This document shows, in pieces, positions 38,694-55,181 of a stretch of 64,000 nucleotides of DNA. The translations under genes and the position numbers were made by a program. Positions within the stretch are counted from its first letter, which is position 1. The number at the start of each line of letters is the position of its first letter. Below the pieces are notes generated by a model. It was given only the letters and a program-made list of their open reading frames with translations. It made no database searches and was not told the origin of the DNA. This DNA is from Gracilinanus agilis (lineage: Eukaryota): the NCBI RefSeq assembly GCF_016433145.1, contig NC_058134.1, forward strand, positions 16,926,038 through 16,990,037, given 5' to 3'.

Positions 38694-39181
38694 GTAATTC
38701 CTTCCGATCATTTTTCATATATCATACGTGTATGTGTATTTACATTCCACATATTTGTGTACAGACATACACACACTTCACTTTTTTGTTGATGTAAAAC
38801 TAAGATAATGAAAAAATTAATTGACTGAGATTTTATTGAGCTGTGACAGCTCATCATAGAAGTCTTCACACACACCTCCACACTGAATTAATGAATGCAG
38901 TAGAAATTCAATTATCTGCATTCTGATNNNNNNNNNNNNNNNNNNNNNNNNNNNNNNNNNNNNNNNNNNNNNNNNNNNNNNNNNNNNNNNNNNNNNNNNN
39001 NNNNNNNNNNNNNNNNNNNNNNNNNNNNNNNNNNNNNNNNNNNNNNNNNNNNNNNNNNNNNNNNNNNNNNNNNNNNNNNNNNNNNNNNNNNNNNNNNNNN
39101 NNNNNNNNNNNNNNNNNNNNNNNNNNNNNNNNNNNNNNNNNNNNNNNNNNNNNNNNNNNNNNNNNNNNNNNNNNNNNNNNN

Positions 39182-39245
39182 TCACAGTTGTGAAGACAGC
39201 AGTCCACATGGATGTAAAACAAGCCCAGCTCTTCAAGAATCCTGA
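39182..39245 (+). CDS. SNX10: SNX10 last coding exon, visible part (HSCEDSSPHGCKTSPALQES*); 5' end lies in an assembly gap
   Basis: Frame CAC(39183)...GAA TCC TGA(39243-39245) matches the human C-terminus GHSSDDSSSHGCKVNTAPQES*. Not present in the supplied ORF track. Confidence 0.9.
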
Positions 39246-41500
39246 AAAATAATTTTTATGTTACTCTGTCAGTAATAGAAAATCATGCCCATGTCACACG
39301 GACAGGGTTGGTTCACAATAGGTACCTCCCAACAGAAAGTCAGGGTGACATGATTGGTGGTGTGTTCGCCAAGCTGTTGCCCTTTTTTTTTTTTTTTTTT
39401 TAAGTTCATTAATGGTTTCCAGTTCCGGGTTTTATGTTGTCTTATTTTGACTAAGGAAAATTCTCTTGGTTATGACTCAGTAAAATAGCAAACACTGAAT
39501 TTTCAGGATGAGGATGATTGATAAACGAGCTCCTTCTCCAATAGGAAATGATTTGTGTTAATATATTTAGGTGTGAATTTAAACCTGTGTGTGTTGTGTA
39601 AAACCTTTGGTTTGGTTCAATTAAAAAATCCACTTGGTACATAAACACAGTTTAAGCCCAGGATATTGCATTTTCTCCTACATTAACATGTCACTTTCCC
39701 CAGACTTTTGAAGCCTGTCATAGGATTTTGTAGTGGATGAATGAGATTTGCTGATATTACGAGGCTCTGTCTCCGAAACAGGGCAAAAACTCGGATGTTG
39801 CTGTGAGTGTGAGTGTGTGTGGCTGACTCAATCCTGGCGAGGGCTGCTCAGCTTCCTCGCCTGCTATTTATTATGCACACAGATGGCACCCACAGCTTAG
39901 CAACGGAGACCTGTGTTCAAATACCTTTTACTCAAGAATGCAAATTCAAATAAATAGGCCGATAGTCTCTTCATTCTTAGCGAAATAGCTTCCCAAGCAG
40001 AGATCAGCTTAAGCCTCAGGTTGGGAGACCCCCAGGCTTTGTTTCTGTCATGTATTTGGCTGCCAGAGAGGAATTTATTTTCTTTCAAAATGTCTCATTT
40101 CTTCTTCACTTGCAATATCTCCTTATTCCTAGTGGTTGTTGCTAGTTTCTTCATTAAAGGGAAAGCCAGGTATTAAAAGGCAGACTAAAGGTAATGGCTA
40201 CCAAAAAGTATTCTGCTAATTTAGGAAATAAGATTAACTAATTGATTATGCATTAAAAAAAAGGCCCATCGATTCCTTTACCCCCTTTAAGGCTCCACTT
40301 GAGAAATGTCGCAGTCTGATAAAATATAGCCTCCACTAGCCTAAAGATAAACTTGGATTCAATAACTTTCTGGTGACAAAGCACTTTAATAAGATAATGA
40401 TCCAAATTTCTTCCTTGTCCTTCCTTGTACAAAGTAATCAGTTTCTATTCTGAGCAACTGGCAGAAAGATATTTGGGAATAACTTGTTGCTTCTCTTGGC
40501 TATTCCTCCTGGCTAGCCTCCTCTGGAGGCTGGTCAAAGATGCCTGCAGAAGGCAGTTAATTTCAGGAGTGTTTTTGTCGTTCTATTATTAATAAACTCC
40601 TCATGGAGGGCGAAGGATAGGACTCAAAATAACAGCACCAAACAAAACAAAAAACGGAGGATAAGAATTATTCCCTCAATTTTGCTGTCTTGCTTTCTTG
40701 TTTGGCCTAAACTCTTATTAGATTTTTGGGAAGGATCTTGATTTAGTATGTGAGGGCTGTTACTGCATCATGGGAGAGCCATTAATTGAAAACAGGGGGG
40801 AAAAACCCCCTAAGATTTAAGAGCTTTCTTAATCACCTTGGTAACGGCGGTGGGGGTAAGAGAAGAAGGAGGGGGTGGCTTGCCATCTAGCTATTAGATT
40901 TATTTATTTATTTTTCTTAGCAGTACATATTTGAATTTACAATCACTATTTCACTTTCGGAATATTTTTAGAAAATGTGAGCAGCCATAAATTTTCATGT
41001 TATTTTTAGATCTTGTAACATAAATATCAAAATGTCTATCTTGTAATTTGTTCCATAAGATGTAATGAATTTTATTTCTAAATTAAATGTGAAGAAATCT
41101 AATCTGGCCTATTTGGTTTATTTCTGAGAAAAAAAAAAGAGAATCAGTCATTTCTTCAATGAGATCAGAATTTATTTTTATTGTTTTTCAAAATTACCTA
41201 AAGAATGTTGGCAAATTGATTTAGTTTTCCCAATTGGTTCTTTTGCAGTTAAAGTTTGGGGATTTTATTTTCAGTTTGATTATTTGGGTTCCCAAACACA
41301 GGCCAATAATAAATAACTGATTTCTTGCCAGTCTCATGAATTTGTATCTAAGATAACACTCTGCTCATCCTCTACCCCCCATTTCCCTGCTTTGTTCAAT
41401 TTCTTACTTACCTGGATTGAATGCATAGGAACCTTTCCATGGGGGCAAGAACACTCAGGTAATTTATAGAGAATAAATGCCCATTTGGATGATTTTTATT
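39246..41500 (+). other. SNX10: Probable SNX10 3'UTR; 3' end uncertain
   Basis: AT-rich, repeat-free sequence after the stop codon, with AATAAA at 39949, 40591, 41308 and near 41473. Confidence 0.55.
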
Positions 41501-42399
41501 TTCAAAAGTATTTATCTAAAAATATGCATTAAAAAACCCCCAAATACTTGAAAATATTTTATGGATTGCTGGGAGCAGGAGTATCCTAGTGATTAACTTG
41601 GACATTTTGAATTTTTAAAAAAAGGCAATACTTCCTTTCCCCTCCCCACCCTTCCTTTTAATTGGTTTATGTGGAACTTAAAGGTTTCCACCATGAAATT
41701 CAACGACCTGTTACGCTACTCAAAAGTCCCACATTTAGGGCAGTAAATAATATTCCTACTTAAAATGTTCTGCTTTTAAAATTGCTACCAAAAGGAAAAT
41801 GCTACTAGGAAATAGCTTGGTATTTTATAAACGCTCCCGAGCGTTTATAAACAACGTCCATTGAGAAAGGTCCAGTGTCACGGGTTTTTCCGAGACTAAT
41901 TCACATTTTATTGCATAATTAAATACAAACATACATTTGCAAAGGAGAGGAGGCAGATTTCCTTAGCAGTTTTTATAAATTAAAAAGATGAATTCAAGCT
42001 CAATTCTGGAAGTAGAGCCAACAATCATTATAATTTTATTTAGAAATCATTTGGTGTTTTCCTTTAGCTCCCAGAAGATGCACCATTAGAAAGCCCCAAG
42101 GGCGTCTGCAGCCCCTGGGCCCAAATGGGACGCCTTTTACTGGTTTAAGACAAAAACTCGTCTTCCTCCCCCCAAACCCCTGGTCCTTCTTTTCCCTAAC
42201 TGAGCATCCTTCCCATTTCAAGTTATTTTGTTGCCACGTTTGCAACACAATGCACCTTTTTCACCCAGGTCCTGGGGGGAAACATTTTTTCCAAGAAAAG
42301 AAAATGATTGTTGTTGTTGGCTGGTTTTATTGTGTAGTGGAGCCGGCGGGAAGTTTTTAGACGAAAAAACAAATGCTGCCGGGAATGAAAGTTTTTAGC

Positions 42400-44500
42400 G
42401 ACCACCTGGCAACAGAAGAACCGCTGACCCTCCGATGATACGCCCCCCCCCCCCCCAACCCTCCCGAGAAATGATTACAGTTTGTAGGAGGGAGGCGAGA
42501 ATCCCAAAATATGTGAATTAGGTAAGATGTCCAAAAAAAAGAAGAAAAGAATAGCAAGTGTTTACAAAGGCCGCCGGTGGCCCCTCCTGCAGAAGGAGAG
42601 CCCCAAGGCACCACTGTCCCCGGAAGCCAGACCCCACCACGGGGCGTCCCTTCCTGGCAGGACACTTTCCTCCCTCATTGTACTGACAAGGGCACTCACT
42701 GGGCAGAAGGGATTTAGCGTCCACGACCCTTTCCTTTTTCTGCGAACTCCCTCTGAACCACGGACTCGGTAGGCCAAAGGCAACAACAGCCCAGGCTCGA
42801 GCCCCATTTCCCCTGGCATTTACACTCTGGGCTTTGGCCCCTTTCAAGGGGCGCAGCCCGAGGGCTCCCTCCTCGGCGGCTGTGCAGCTCCCGCCGCGCA
42901 GCTGGGGGCACCGTCCTGGCCAGCTTCTTACCTCCGGGCTCCCCACCCACCCACTTGCACTGACTGGGTGCAGGGGCTGCCTCAGTGGCCTGCGCACCAG
43001 CTCCCGCGCTCCCTCTGCGTGGGTCTCTCTCTCTCTGCCCCGCACACGCGCGTTCCTCCCTCCTCCCCAGCCTGGGCTCGCGGCGTGCACAGGCTCCAGC
43101 AGGCTCGAGCTGCTGGGACTGCTTGTCAGGTAACCAAGCAGCCGGCCTTGGGCCGGTAACCCATGGCAACCGCCCTGGTAACCCATAGCAACGGCAACAA
43201 AAAGGGGAGGGGGAGGAGTGGGAACAACCATGTACACAAAAAGGCAGCCATTGACTGCGCAGACAGACTGGGAGCGGGCCTGGGGTGGGGGGGCTGCCAA
43301 GGATTAAACCCCCCTCGAGCCAGGCCTAGGATGCTTCCTGCCCCCGCCCTACCCCACCCCATCCCACCCTCCCGCTGCCGTCCTAACCGAGGACGGAGAG
43401 AGTCGGGGGTCAGGACTTTAGTGCCCCACCCCCCTTCCTGGGCCACCTCTTCCAGGCCACATCCGGGACAGGGAGGGGCTCCCGCCAGGCCTCTAGTTTT
43501 GCTGAGGACAGGGACTTGTTTATTCTTGAAAAAGCGGCCCTGCCTGGAGCTGAGCTGAGTTGTGCGTATTTGGGTGTGCCTGCAAGGCTGTAGCCGTGGG
43601 TGTGAGCAGTTGTGAGTGTGCACTGTTTGCACGTCTACCCACCCGCGGGCCTGCGCGGGGGTAGGGGGTGGGGGTGGTCTGCATCTACAGTCTTCTCGAG
43701 CGGTGCAGCCATGTTTTCAGGGCCGCCCTGCGTGCGCGCGCCTGTCGGGCTCGGAGCTCAGCGTGCGTGCGCGCGCTCTTTTGTCTGGCTGGGCCCGGGT
43801 ACAATGGCACGCCTTTGTGTGTGCGTGCACATGATGGGCGCGCGCGCGCGCCGAGCCTGTCCCAGCCCCCTGGGGGTTGCTCCTGGTCCCAATGCCGCAG
43901 TAGCTCTTTGTTCCACTGGGGTTCGGAGCTGGGGCATCCTCCGCCAGTGCCCCGGCCTCGAGGGTCAGGCTTGGGTGCCCAAGACCTTAAGTCTGCGGCT
44001 GAAAAGCCACGGCCTCCTTTGGTGTCTGGTCTGCACGCACTCAGGGTTAAAGCCCTCCCTCCCACGCACGCCCGCTCCCCACGTGCCCCTCCTTTCCTGG
44101 GCCGCCCTCGCTCGGGAACCGCCCTCCGGTCTGCTTCCAAAAAGATCTAGTTTTTGGGCGCAGCGTTGGGACGGTGCGGAGCATTCTCTCCGGGAAGCGA
44201 GGCACCTTTGTGCTAGACTACGACGTATCCCTGCTGGACCCCGCCCTCCGGGGTGACTGTCCCTGAAGGCATTGCTTCGGAGGAAATAAGCATCATTCAC
44301 CCCGTGTACGTGTGTGTTCCATGTCAGTGTCCATCCGCACGTAACACACATGTTTAGGTTCCGGGTCCCTGCCAAAGGAACCAGCATCTTATGGCTAACT
44401 AGTAAGCTTACTGGGGGCGCAGAGCTAAGTAGGGCGCCGAGGAATCACAGTATGGCAGACTGTACGTAGGGGCCGCCGCATCAGTGTCTCCAAAGCGGGC
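42400..44500. promoter_or_regulatory. Large CpG island about 3 kb past the SNX10 stop; promoter-like, with RFX X-boxes
   Basis: CpG-dense and repeat-free. GTAACCCATGGCAAC at 43156-43170 and GTAACCCATAGCAAC at 43178-43192. Confidence 0.8.
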
Positions 44501-47499
44501 GTTTCTCTGCTCCAACACAGCCCCTACCTATTTTGTTGCAAGTCTCCTAACTGACCTCCCCGAAAGCTGCAAGTCGTCCCTTTTATGTAGCTGCCATAAT
44601 GGTTTTCCCAAAATATAGGTCTGATCATTTCACTCCCTCTCAACCCTCCCTAGTGCTTCTAGGACCAAATGTCATTTCATCTTTATCTCATCCTTTTCTG
44701 TTGTCTTTTTGTGTATAAATTTTTATATCTTGCATAATTATTATTTTTAAATGCTCACCTTCTTTAGAATCAATGCCATGTATTGGTTCCAAGGCAGAAG
44801 AGTAGTAGAGGCTAGGTAATGGGGCTTAAGTGACTTGCCCAGAGTCACACAGCAAGGAAGTATCTGAGGTCACATTTGAACCCAGGACCTCCCATCTCAA
44901 TCCACTGAGCCACCTAGCTGCCCACAATGTGTGTAATTATTAGTAAAGTGGGCAACTAGGTGACTCAGTGAAGAGAGTCCAGAAGCCTTGAGCTCAAGTC
45001 CAGCCTCCGATACTTCCTAGCTGTGTGACTCCAGGCTAGGCATTTAACCCAATTCTCCTCAGTTTCCTCATCTGTAAAATGAGCTGGAGAAGGAAATGGC
45101 AACTCACTACAGTATCTTTGCCAAGAAGATCCCAAATGGGGTCACAAAAAGTCAGACATGGCTGAAACATGATTGAACAAATGAGTACTGTAGCAAATCT
45201 ATATAATTTTAAATAAGTAACTTACATTGGAGGTACACATCCAGTTGTCTATTGATAGGAATGTGATAAAAAAATTTGGGAGACCTCAACGCCATCCTAC
45301 TTAGAACTAATGAAGTGTATGTCTGTCTGTCCATCTGTCTGTTGATTTTTGTTGTTCTTGCTCAAGACCTGTCATTCGCTGATGAGGGAACCTCCTCTAC
45401 CTACCTAGAGACCAAATGAAGAGGGGTGAAGTTAGATGACAGCCAGGGTCACATGGTAATAGACGGTAAAATGGGCGAAGAGGGGAGGCTTGACCAGGCT
45501 TTCCTGACTCCCCAGGCTGTCATGCCCACACCCGCAGTATTACAGGTACAAACACCATACATAATGCAGTTCTCCTAACTCTAAAACTTAACATTTAGTT
45601 CCACTCTTTTATTTTTCAGATGAGGAAACTGAGGAAGGCTAAAGTGAAAGGATTTGTTCAAGTTTATAAGGGCAAGTAAGTAGCAGAGAGGATTCAATCC
45701 ATTATTCTTTTCAAATGAAAAAGATTTTATCACAACCCTATGGATATTTATTAATTTATAATAGAATTAATATTTATTATGAAAATATAACTATTATATA
45801 GAAGAAATGTTAATATTTAGAAGACTTGTGCCAATCATCATTGTTCTTATCATTTCAGGACTTAAGATCTGTGTTACTATGGGCAAAGGTCATTTAACTT
45901 CCACGAACTCAGTTTTCTCATCTGTAAAATGGGGACAATAATACTTGTGCTATTATTACTATGTACTATATTACCTTTCAGGGTTATAGTGATTAAATAA
46001 TCGACATATGGCACACAGACACATACCTACCCATCCATATGTATATATACCATAGTAAATTATACATAATATATATATACATATTTTTTTGGTCCAAGTG
46101 TATTCTCTGACTCCTCCTAATTTTATGATCACCAGAATGCCATTTAACGCTTAGACCACGATCACAAATTATGTCAGTTTCTAATCCAACGCAGCTTGGT
46201 GGTCCAGTGGATAGAGCTGGTCTTGAAGTCAAGATCCGAATTCAAATCCAGACTCAAAGACACTTGGCCAAGTCACTCGACCTCATTTGCCTCAGTTTCT
46301 TCATCTGTCAGAGCTCTTATAATTATGACTAATACTAGCTAACATCAATAAGTGTTATTAATAAGTGACTGAGTGATTAGTAGGTGAACCCGAAGGTCCC
46401 TTGCAGTTCTCGATCTCTGGTACTGCCGGTTCCGAATTTAGGAATTTAGCTGGTGGAAGAGCTGCTCCTTCAGCTTGGGCTGCCCCCACGAACGGCTAGA
46501 GCACCGGCCACACGCCTGCCTTTCACACACAAAGGCAAACGTGTACAAATCAAGTTTTTGTCGTTGCATCACGCTACCAAGGCCAAGTTTTTATTGGACT
46601 CTTGTAAAACGAATCATCGCCGCCTTATTTACCTTGTGGGGAAGCCGCGTCTTTCATAGACGGGTTTGCGTAGAGTGAGGCCTGCCACGGTCCAATCTGC
46701 ATGGCCTCAGGCTTTCCCTCGGTGCTCAAAGAGAGCCTGGGGGGCATTGAGGGACGGAGGCGGAGGGATCGCGCCATGGAGCCCCTTCCTCTCCGGCCCG
46801 TGCACCAGGAGTGCCCGTTGCTTTCCTTTCCTTTTTTTTTTTAAACAAAAGCAATTCCGGAAAAGTGCACATTTCCCGGGTGCCAGTTCCCGTTTTGCCG
46901 GCCCTTCCTGCAAACAGCGGGAGCCCCAAGGCCTCGTGGCGCGGAGTCCTGTAAGCCCCAGTCCGGGCTGCGCGGACGCACAATGAATCGNNNNNNNNNN
47001 NNNNNNNNNNNNNNNNNNNNNNNNNNNNNNNNNNNNNNNNNNNNNNNNNNNNNNNNNNNNNNNNNNNNNNNNNNNNNNNNNNNNNNNNNNNNNNNNNNNN
47101 NNNNNNNNNNNNNNNNNNNNNNGAGCATCTGGAATTGCCGCGCCAGTGAGGTTTAGTGAGGACGACCTATTGCTGGAGTCAGGCGGCCCCTTTGTAATCA
47201 GCCGCCCGCTCTGCCGGGTGCGGGGCGGGAGGGGGGCTGGAAGGAAGAAGCCCGCGAAGGACATTACCTTCCTGCGCGAGGGGAAGGAAGTTTCGCTCCC
47301 CCCCCCCCCCCCCCATATTGCTGAGGAGCGCTGGCCTTCCCAGCTGAATGGAAACATTAATTGCCATCATAAGGGGATGCGGTTATGTAAGCGCCCCGGG
47401 AGAAGGCGGAGGGAGGGAGGGAGGGAGGGATTGAGCCTATTGCCAAATGAGGCCATATTCGGACTCTTTGGATTTGGGGGTAGGAGGGGGAAAAGGGGG

Positions 47500-52557: not shown

Positions 52558-55181
52558 TGTAAAATGAACTGGAGAAGGAAATAATAAGCCACTCCAGTAT
52601 CTCTGCCAAGAAAACCCCAAAGGGGTTGCAAAGAGTCAGACATAACTGAAATGACTGAACAACAACAAGAACAACACATAGCTAGTAAGTATTTGAGGCT
52701 GGATTTGAACTCAGTTCTTCCTGACTATGCCTGATTCTGATCTATCCAGTTGCCATCAGTTCTGTTCATGTACCTTCTTGTGCGCCTTGGTAATACAAGG
52801 CAGAATTTATCTTTCCATGACCTTTTGGGTCCCTCACAATTTTGATTCTTCTGAAATCCTGGTGCTCCATGATTTGTTTGATATGGAAATATATGGAGAA
52901 CTGGCCTTTGAAAAGATGGATGGTGGCGAGCCACTTCTTCTCAGCTTCCCATGCGGGTCCCAAACCACTCTTTTCCTATTGAGTTTTGGATCCAATTCAT
53001 TTATTCATTTACTTGGAAACAATCATTAATTTGTACTGTAGTCTTTCCTTCTCTGTGATAACTACTCCCAATTCCATTAGCCAACCTTCATGAGTTGAAC
53101 TTGAACCCTAAAATCCTCTTTCTTTAAAAAACAACAACAGACCTCAGAATCAATACTATCAATTCTAAGACAGAAGAATAAGGGCCAGGCAATTGGGGTT
53201 AAGTGATTTGCACAGAGTCACACAGGTTGGAAGTGTTTGAGGTCAGATTGGAACTCAGAACCTCCAGGTCTGGTTCTCAGCCCACTGAGCCACCTAGCTG
53301 TCCCTCCTAAAATTTTTTCCATGACTATCTTGGGTGACAACGTCCCAAATTCAGATGAGAAAATGTACATAAACACTTTAGAAAGCTTAAAAGTCTATAT
53401 AAATCTAAACTATTACTATTATTATTAGTGATAACCACAACTTGTTATTATCAGAGTTTCTCTAAAAGGGTCTGATCAGTGTTTAGGAAAGCAAATGGCT
53501 AATTTCTTGGTCTTTTTTTTTTAAACATATCCCAAGTGTCGATTCAGATGATCATAGTCCAATATGCCTCCTAGAGCCTTTTAAATTATTAACAAAGTGA
53601 AGTGCTTATGGAATACTCATAGTGCACTGGGCNNNNNNNNNNNNNNNNNNNNNNNNNNNNNNNNNNNNNNNNNNNNNNNNNNNNNNNNNNNNNNNNNNNN
53701 NNNNNNNNNNNNNNNNNNNNNNNNNNNNNNNNNNNNNNNNNNNNNNNNNNNNNNNNNNNNNNNNNNNNNNNNNNNNNNNNNNNNNNNNNNNNNNNNNNNN
53801 NNNNNNNNNNNNAGGAAGTAGAAAAGAAAGAAATGTAGAAGGAAAGAAAGAAGCAAAAAAAAAAAAAGAAAGGAAAGAAGGAATTAAAAAATTTGAATAT
53901 CACCCTAAAAACAAATGAAGGTCTGACTGGACAGAGCTGTGATTTAAAAAGAAAGCCAGTCCAAACTCTCAGAGAAGGCAGAGAAAACCTTTTTATTTTT
54001 TTACACAGATAGAGGATGGGTCCTCAAGATAGACACCAGAGCCGCAAATCATACATGCAAGGAAAACTTATGATCATTTTTCTGAAGGGGCAAAAACCAT
54101 GTGATAACAAAGGGAGGAGGCAGCAATAGCATCTGTGGTGGCCCACGTGGCCATGGAAACTTGGCTGAAAGATGAAATAGTTTGATTTTTTCTTAAATTA
54201 AAAATTTTTTTCAATTAAAAAATCTTTTCTCTCTCTCTTTCTCTCCCCCAACTCCTCCTCCCATTGGAAAAAAATTAGGAAAAAAGGAATAAAACCCTTC
54301 TAACTAATGTACACAGTCTTACAAACCTTATTCCTACCTTGGCCATATCCAAGGCATAATGTCTGCATCCTGTATCACCTTTTTAACATGTAGAAGAAGT
54401 GAGAGCAGATTTTTCTATTTATATAAGAATGGCTGAAATGTTGTATACAGCAGAAAAAAGAGACAAAAAATATGAGGCACACCCAGGAATGTTTTCATAT
54501 ATATATATATATATATATATAAAATTTTAAATATTCTGTTGTAATTGTATTTATTATTTTTAAAAATTTTTTATTTTTTAGAATATTTTCCCATGGTTAC
54601 ATGATTCGTGTTCTCCCCTCCCAACCCCTCCCTCCCTCCCTGTAGCCAACTCACAATTCCACTGGTTTTTACATGTATCATCTAATATATTTTTATTTAT
54701 TTTGTTAAATATTTCCCAGTTATAGGTAAAATTATTTTTAACATTCATTAAAAAAAACCCTTACCTTCTATCTTAGAAGTCATATTGTATATTAGTTCCA
54801 AGGCAGAAGAGCTGTAAGGGCTAAGCAATAGAGATCCCAGACTTCCCCAGGGTCCCACACCTAGGAAATGTCTGAGGTCACATTTGAACCCAGAACCTCT
54901 CATCTTTAGGCCTGGCTCTCCATTCACTGAAACACCTAACTACCTTCTTTAACATTCATTTTAAAAAATGTTGAGTTCCAAATTCTCTCTCTCCCTCCTC
55001 CATCCCAAGGGATTTTCTCTAAAAAAATGTTGTCTTTATTCCTTTGTTTTCCACACTCCCTGTTATATTTACCATTATACTACCTTCCCCTCACCACTGA
55101 ACTGTTCTTTGTCTCAGAGAAGAAAAAGCTAAGTAAAACCACCAGACAAAACAATGGCATCTGTTATCTGTTGATCTAGGC

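Follow-up and report, generated by a model that had tools for sequence, protein, structure and literature searches.

A 43-bp array downstream of SNX10 in the opossum Gracilinanus agilis is best explained as the core of an ancient cis-regulatory element, most likely bound by winged-helix factors of the RFX family, that lies within an orphan CpG island, with about 0.45 kb separating it from the end of the SNX10 transcript; we give this reading a probability of roughly 0.6. What began as a motif sighting becomes a defined 43-bp element, invariant across mammals and open to deletion or mutation. The features of the window (the whole 64-kb stretch of opossum DNA that was analysed) on which the argument rests are as follows.

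39243-42712, plus strand: SNX10 3′ UTR, beginning at the stop codon and reaching the equivalent of the gene end annotated in the Tasmanian devil, placed by collinear 4-kb alignment.
42750-44350, no strand: CpG island containing the boxes, with AT-rich DNA on both sides, defined from GC and CpG composition.
43030-43270, no strand: conserved non-coding block around the boxes, with an GCACACGCGCG motif upstream and GGGAACAAC ... ATT(T/G)AC.GCGCAG downstream.
43130-43142, plus strand: weak third box, GTAACC-A-AGCAGC, with one mismatch in its right half, overlapping CAGGTA.
43139-43155, plus strand: conserved flank directly 5′ of box A with a GCCGGCCT core, found by alignment, common to the lizards and partly to the bird.
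43150-43192, plus strand: core array of four RGYAAC half-sites starting at 43155, 43165, 43177 and 43187, found by pattern search.
43156-43170, plus strand: box A, GTAACC-CAT-GGCAAC (GTAACCCATGGCAAC), X-box-type with an N3 spacer, found from the sequence and by pattern search.
43178-43192, plus strand: box B, GTAACC-CAT-AGCAAC (GTAACCCATAGCAAC), a direct repeat of box A 22 bp downstream, found in the same way.
43193-43198, plus strand: extra GGCAAC half-site, specific to the opossum.

Paired boxes and same-strand half-sites

In the RFX literature, the monomer site is given as GTTRCY and the X-box as GTNRCC-N0-3-RGYAAC. The initial annotation of this DNA had listed two perfect GTNRCC-N3-RGYAAC boxes starting 22 bp apart, a weaker box at 43130-43142 and an additional GGCAAC at 43193, and all of these are present in the sequence, boxes A and B both fitting the N3 pattern and matching the RFX matrices. 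To call the pair perfect X-boxes overstates the match, which is perfect only against the loose biochemical consensus. Both boxes sit at the limit of that consensus, N3 being the widest spacer it allows, and they are not true palindromes because GTAACC, which forms the left half, does not match an inverted RFX monomer (its complement, GGTTAC, does not fit RGYAAC). The left half instead overlaps GGTAAC, itself an RGYAAC sequence, so that the left halves double as half-sites on the same strand. A pattern search of 42700-43700 placed every RGYAAC match on the plus strand, and the four half-sites of the array, at offsets of -1, 9, 21 and 31 from the start of box A, are spaced by 10, 12 and 10 bp and recur as four same-strand half-sites in every mammal compared. 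On its sequence, the array is open to being read both as two N3 inverted boxes and as four direct half-sites one helical turn apart.

The GTNRCC-N3-RGYAAC pattern has three matches in the window against 0.06 expected from dinucleotide shuffles (0/100 shuffles reach three). Boxes A and B are copies of one 22-bp unit, identical at 18/22 positions and at 15 of the first 16, and the presence of the pair in one genome therefore needs local duplication only and does not represent independent chance events; Tandem Repeats Finder did not call the 22-bp units. Chance is excluded by the conservation of the pair between species, described below, and not by the motif statistics.

The window was scanned with the JASPAR matrices MA0600.1 (RFX2, full site with a 2-nt spacer) and MA0510.1 (RFX5, half-site), using counts from the supplement of PMC5838959 and the 80% full-site threshold used there. 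With the N2 matrix MA0600.1 the boxes score 0.851 and 0.825, above the threshold yet unremarkable at rank 8 of 34 window hits. When one neutral spacer column is added to MA0600.1 to give an N3 variant, box A scores 0.93, the highest in the 64 kb, and box B scores 0.91 at rank 3. Half-site hits with MA0510.1 of 0.94, 0.91, 0.87 and 0.87 crowd into 45 bp of one strand, against an expectation of about 0.03 at the density of such hits over the window, and the best two rank second (0.94, box A) and fifth (0.91) in the window and count as strong half-sites. The hits at 0.94, 0.91 and 0.87 are retained in all mammals compared. As a control, six comparable hits were followed in the rest of the alignable 4.3 kb, and only one of them is shared by both other marsupials, versus 3/4 in the array, where the half-site lacking a retained hit in the other marsupials is the extra GGCAAC at 43193-43198.

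Readings of the array as Myb, NFI, YY1, PAR-bZIP, CTCF or forkhead sites, judged by eye, were partial or not conserved.

Conservation in mammals and sauropsids

SNX10 loci with 10-kb flanks were compared from Dromiciops, Tasmanian devil, echidna, red deer, Anolis, hummingbird, Myotis, colugo and Zootoca (L001 to L009, in that order). They were reached through SNX10 exon translations, then a marsupial isoform query and then full-length non-human SNX10 proteins, human being left out. Eight non-human species besides the opossum were informative, the site in Myotis falling in a 100-N assembly gap.

Both boxes and their 22-bp spacing are identical in opossum, Dromiciops, Tasmanian devil, echidna, red deer and colugo, that is, in marsupials, a monotreme and placentals. 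Across these six mammals 40/43 columns of the core (43150-43192) are invariant, compared with 26/79 in the left flank and 19/98 in the right (19-33%), and the echidna has a single base difference, located in the spacer between the boxes. Judged by this contrast between core and flanks, the paired sites are under strong purifying selection and constitute a real, deeply conserved control element. The setting of the array is also alignable: 39250-43270 is collinear with Dromiciops and devil, marsupials of South America and Australia, over about 4 kb at approximately 74-75% identity, 39250-42700 of it being the SNX10 3′ UTR region, and three-way marsupial identity peaks at 0.86-0.90 over 43050-43250 versus 0.68 overall. 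The block around the boxes aligns to echidna over 43039-43268 and to colugo over 42993-43195.

The initial annotation had described a helically phased cluster of X-boxes that also took in a weaker box and an extra half-site. The weak third box is kept as a box in marsupials only, the corresponding sequence being GTAGCA in echidna, GTAGCG in deer and GTAGAG in colugo, and the extra GGCAAC is found only in the opossum, other marsupials having CGCAAC or CGCGAC. Both are, on this alignment, lineage-specific and outside the constrained core. The helical phasing did not hold up as a separate property of the array. The 22-bp spacing is constant in mammals, as is the rest of the block, and since the whole block is invariant, mammals cannot show which positions matter and selection on phase is inseparable from selection on sequence. 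The hummingbird, the sole lineage with an indel, has a spacing of 16 bp, about one and a half turns, and the squamates have a single box. Phasing of the boxes is, from these comparisons, a possible feature of the element.

All three sauropsids examined keep at least one site scoring 0.90 or more. Zootoca has one box, identical to box B. Anolis has one box, GTCGCC-CAT-AGCAAC, with two changes (A to C and A to G) where the consensus allows N and R; they bring the left half nearer to the optimum GTTGCC and raise the N3 score to 0.95, and for these reasons Anolis favours the inverted N3 reading of the array. The hummingbird sequence is GTAACT-CGG-GGCAAC followed 16 bp later by GCAGCC-CAT-GGCAAC, in which GGTAAC and both GGCAAC halves are retained and the left half of box B is lost. 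The sauropsid sites are all preceded by a GCCGGCCT-type flank and lie 3.8-5.7 kb after SNX10, and this common flank and similar distance support their orthology. What amniotes preserve best is RGCAAC and the CC(C)AT leading into it, where the RFX matrices carry most of their information. The element is, on the evidence of these alignments, at least as old as the amniotes. Parsimony, applied to three sauropsids only, mildly favours two boxes in the amniote ancestor with loss of one unit in squamates.

The SNX10 locus and the CpG island

SNX10 is encoded on the plus strand of the window; its coding exons lie near 22.05, 27.35, 28.77 and 38.48 kb, and its stop codon falls at about 39242. An N run at 38928-39181 coincides with the last SNX10 coding exon. 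The gene end annotated in the devil (L002:42402) corresponds to about 42712 in the window, which leaves roughly 440 bp to box A. The placement of the boxes on the 3′ side of SNX10, as originally annotated, is borne out: they lie approximately 3.9 kb past the opossum stop codon, with a range of 3.7-4.05 kb in mammals and 3.7-5.7 kb across all species compared. Read from these loci, such a near-constant distance across amniotes shows stable linkage and not regulation.

Within the SNX10 3′ UTR, three-way identity peaks at 0.8-0.9 over 40650-41050, and pieces of the UTR align to placentals. Its most conserved part includes an X-box-like sequence, ATCACC-TT-GGTAAC, at 40832-40850, which is kept in Dromiciops and devil with higher half-site scores (0.95-0.96) and for which no match was found in the monotreme or the placentals.

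The boxes are situated towards the 5′ side of the CpG island. At 43501-44500 GC content is above 0.55 and the CpG observed/expected ratio above 0.6 over several hundred bp. Around the boxes GC and CpG rise between about -400 and +1200 bp; marsupials, the two placentals and the bird show this most clearly, echidna and the lizards less so. In the six mammals GC skew is negative upstream of the boxes and mostly positive downstream. A switch of GC skew within a CpG island is typical of the centre of a divergent CpG-island promoter, and the coincidence of island and skew switch at the boxes is suggestive of such a centre. None of the nine loci has a protein-coding gene called in the 10 kb downstream. 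In published ChIP data, RFX peaks are centred slightly upstream of transcription start sites, with under a third in promoter regions, and validated human X-boxes are mostly located from -500 to +500 bp of start sites.

Two further features lie downstream of the island. Repeats at 44780-45190 resemble marsupial SINEs, and many copies of them occur in the loci of Dromiciops, devil and echidna. A second deeply conserved non-coding block at 46810-46990, AT-rich and enhancer-like, has about 80% column identity with deer, bat and colugo; its distance from the boxes, on their downstream side, is about 3.6 kb (about 1.9 kb in placentals), and it runs into an N stretch at 46991-47122. At least two N runs, this one and the one over the last SNX10 coding exon, thus coincide with strongly conserved sequence, and they resemble deliberate masking more than assembly gaps.

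The initial annotation had also tied the boxes to cilia through SNX10, proposing an RFX module that controls SNX10 from its 3′ side or a cilia-linked lncRNA. The report it had in mind exists, a role of SNX10 in ciliogenesis with the V-ATPase having been reported (Chen et al. 2012), and SNX10 has also been reported in osteoclast function. No link between RFX and SNX10 itself emerged from this analysis or from the papers and target tables searched: SNX10 is not in the searchable RFX target tables, and no paper was found coupling it with RFX X-boxes. A human lncRNA, SNX10-AS1, is named in the literature, and the literature on lncRNA names near human SNX10 gave no direct RFX link and no coordinates for it. 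The proposal of an RFX module is partly supported, in its motifs, matrix match, constraint and 3′ location, and is weakened by the ordinary N2 scores and by the missing literature connection with SNX10. The array is the obvious place to look for a transcriptional link between SNX10, RFX and cilia.

Probable RFX binding, its rivals and known RFX systems

RFX proteins probably bind the array, judging from its motifs and their conservation, and the reading that competes most directly with this one is that another factor or complex recognizes the GGTAACC and CCCATRGCAAC words, the resemblance to X-boxes being partial and coincidental. We regard this as unlikely, if deserving of serious attention. 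The N3 spacing and the left half do depart from the ChIP-derived RFX optimum, with ordinary N2 scores as noted above; mammalian constraint spans all 43 bp together with the GCCGGCCT flank and CAGGTA, beyond what RFX contacts need; and GGTAACC occurs three times in the window, each time at the array. However, the best-kept part of the element in amniotes is precisely the part that is strongest in the RFX matrices, the Anolis changes obey the degeneracy of the X-box, and no factor with a better-fitting motif is known to us.

The constraint might alternatively act on RNA: the block would belong to an SNX10 isoform with a long 3′ UTR, or would mark where the first exon of a non-coding RNA meets its intron, and would be preserved for splicing or for recognition by RNA-binding proteins. 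The CAG|GTA just upstream of the boxes is invariant in six mammals, and the long SNX10 3′ UTR remains conserved until about 440 bp short of the boxes. An RNA-level role is nevertheless very unlikely, because the fold of 43100-43215 is no more stable than shuffles (z-score +0.49), no Rfam family occurs in the whole window, and the putative donor at 43129/43130, a reading of CAG|GTAACC, varies between species at +4 to +6 and lacks the usual +5 G. The lizards and the bird, moreover, keep the box and not CAGGTA, and the CpG island around the block is promoter-like in its composition. A neutral local tandem duplication, or a functionless chance match to the motif, could account for the spacing within a single genome without selection, since the boxes are copies of one unit; this explanation is scarcely credible, and is refuted, both copies being identical in the marsupials, the monotreme and the two placental orders compared while the flanks diverged, with the box kept in lizards and bird as well.

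Under the preferred RFX reading, RFX dimers would occupy the two tandem N3-spaced boxes or, viewed alternatively, four half-sites presented once per helical turn on the same face of the DNA. Bound RFX would activate transcription starting in the island, unless the paralogue involved were RFX1, which would instead repress it. Transcription from the island could yield a non-coding RNA from either strand; alternatively, the array may serve SNX10 directly, enhancing or silencing it from the 3′ side. Candidate targets are SNX10, an antisense RNA and a non-coding RNA further downstream. A more elaborate proposal is that the array supports a distinct RFX assembly, in which four same-strand half-sites would hold two dimers side by side on one helix face, fixed since early mammals from a single amniote box and serving as an orphan CpG-island promoter switch through which the ciliogenic programme would be coupled to SNX10 or to its antisense or downstream RNA; we consider this speculative and rather improbable. 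The unusual grammar of the array, with N3 spacers and same-strand half-sites one turn apart, makes it a natural test of the flexibility of RFX dimers on DNA.

The RFX5 complex binds the S-X arrangement of MHC class II promoters, which resembles the array in that RFX-type boxes are repeated in the same orientation with a short, fixed distance between them, and box B resembles the CCYAGCAAC half-site type of the RFX5 matrix. Unlike the S-X arrangement, the array is not followed by an X2 (CRE-like) or Y (CCAAT) box where one would be expected, and the locus is not known to be connected with antigen presentation. A second comparison is offered by the X-box pair of MAP1A, which acts in repression. 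The two MAP1A X-boxes, at +38 and +80 (Table S5, PMC5838959), and the opossum boxes both represent two close RFX sites, possibly just downstream of a start site, but the MAP1A sites are N2 palindromes about 42 bp apart whereas the opossum boxes are N3 direct repeats 22 bp apart. Both GGTAAC and GGCAAC serve as right halves of experimentally validated human X-boxes, GGTAAC in MYC, according to the same table. Compared with the RFX X-boxes of ciliary and other target promoters (JASPAR MA0600.1 and MA0510.1), the array is alike in its fit to the consensus and the half-site matrix, its CpG-island setting, which promoter-proximal X-boxes share, and its deeply conserved RGCAAC, and differs in its N3 spacer where N1-N2 is usual, in a left half that is not an inverted monomer, in its same-strand half-sites and in being known from sequence alone.

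Elsewhere in the window, a canonical palindromic N2 X-box, GTTACC-AA-GGCAAC, is located at 3222-3235 and is the best hit to the RFX2 matrix in the window (0.91-0.94). An N run adjoins it, a CpG island at 1.0-1.75 kb is close by, and the X-box is identical in the devil in a conserved context (L002:8405, about 1.6 kb upstream of the annotated SNX10 start). A near-palindromic X-box-like sequence, GTGGCC-AT-GGAAAC, at 54142-54165, outside the flanks that were compared, scores 0.91 on both strands with the RFX2 core matrix.
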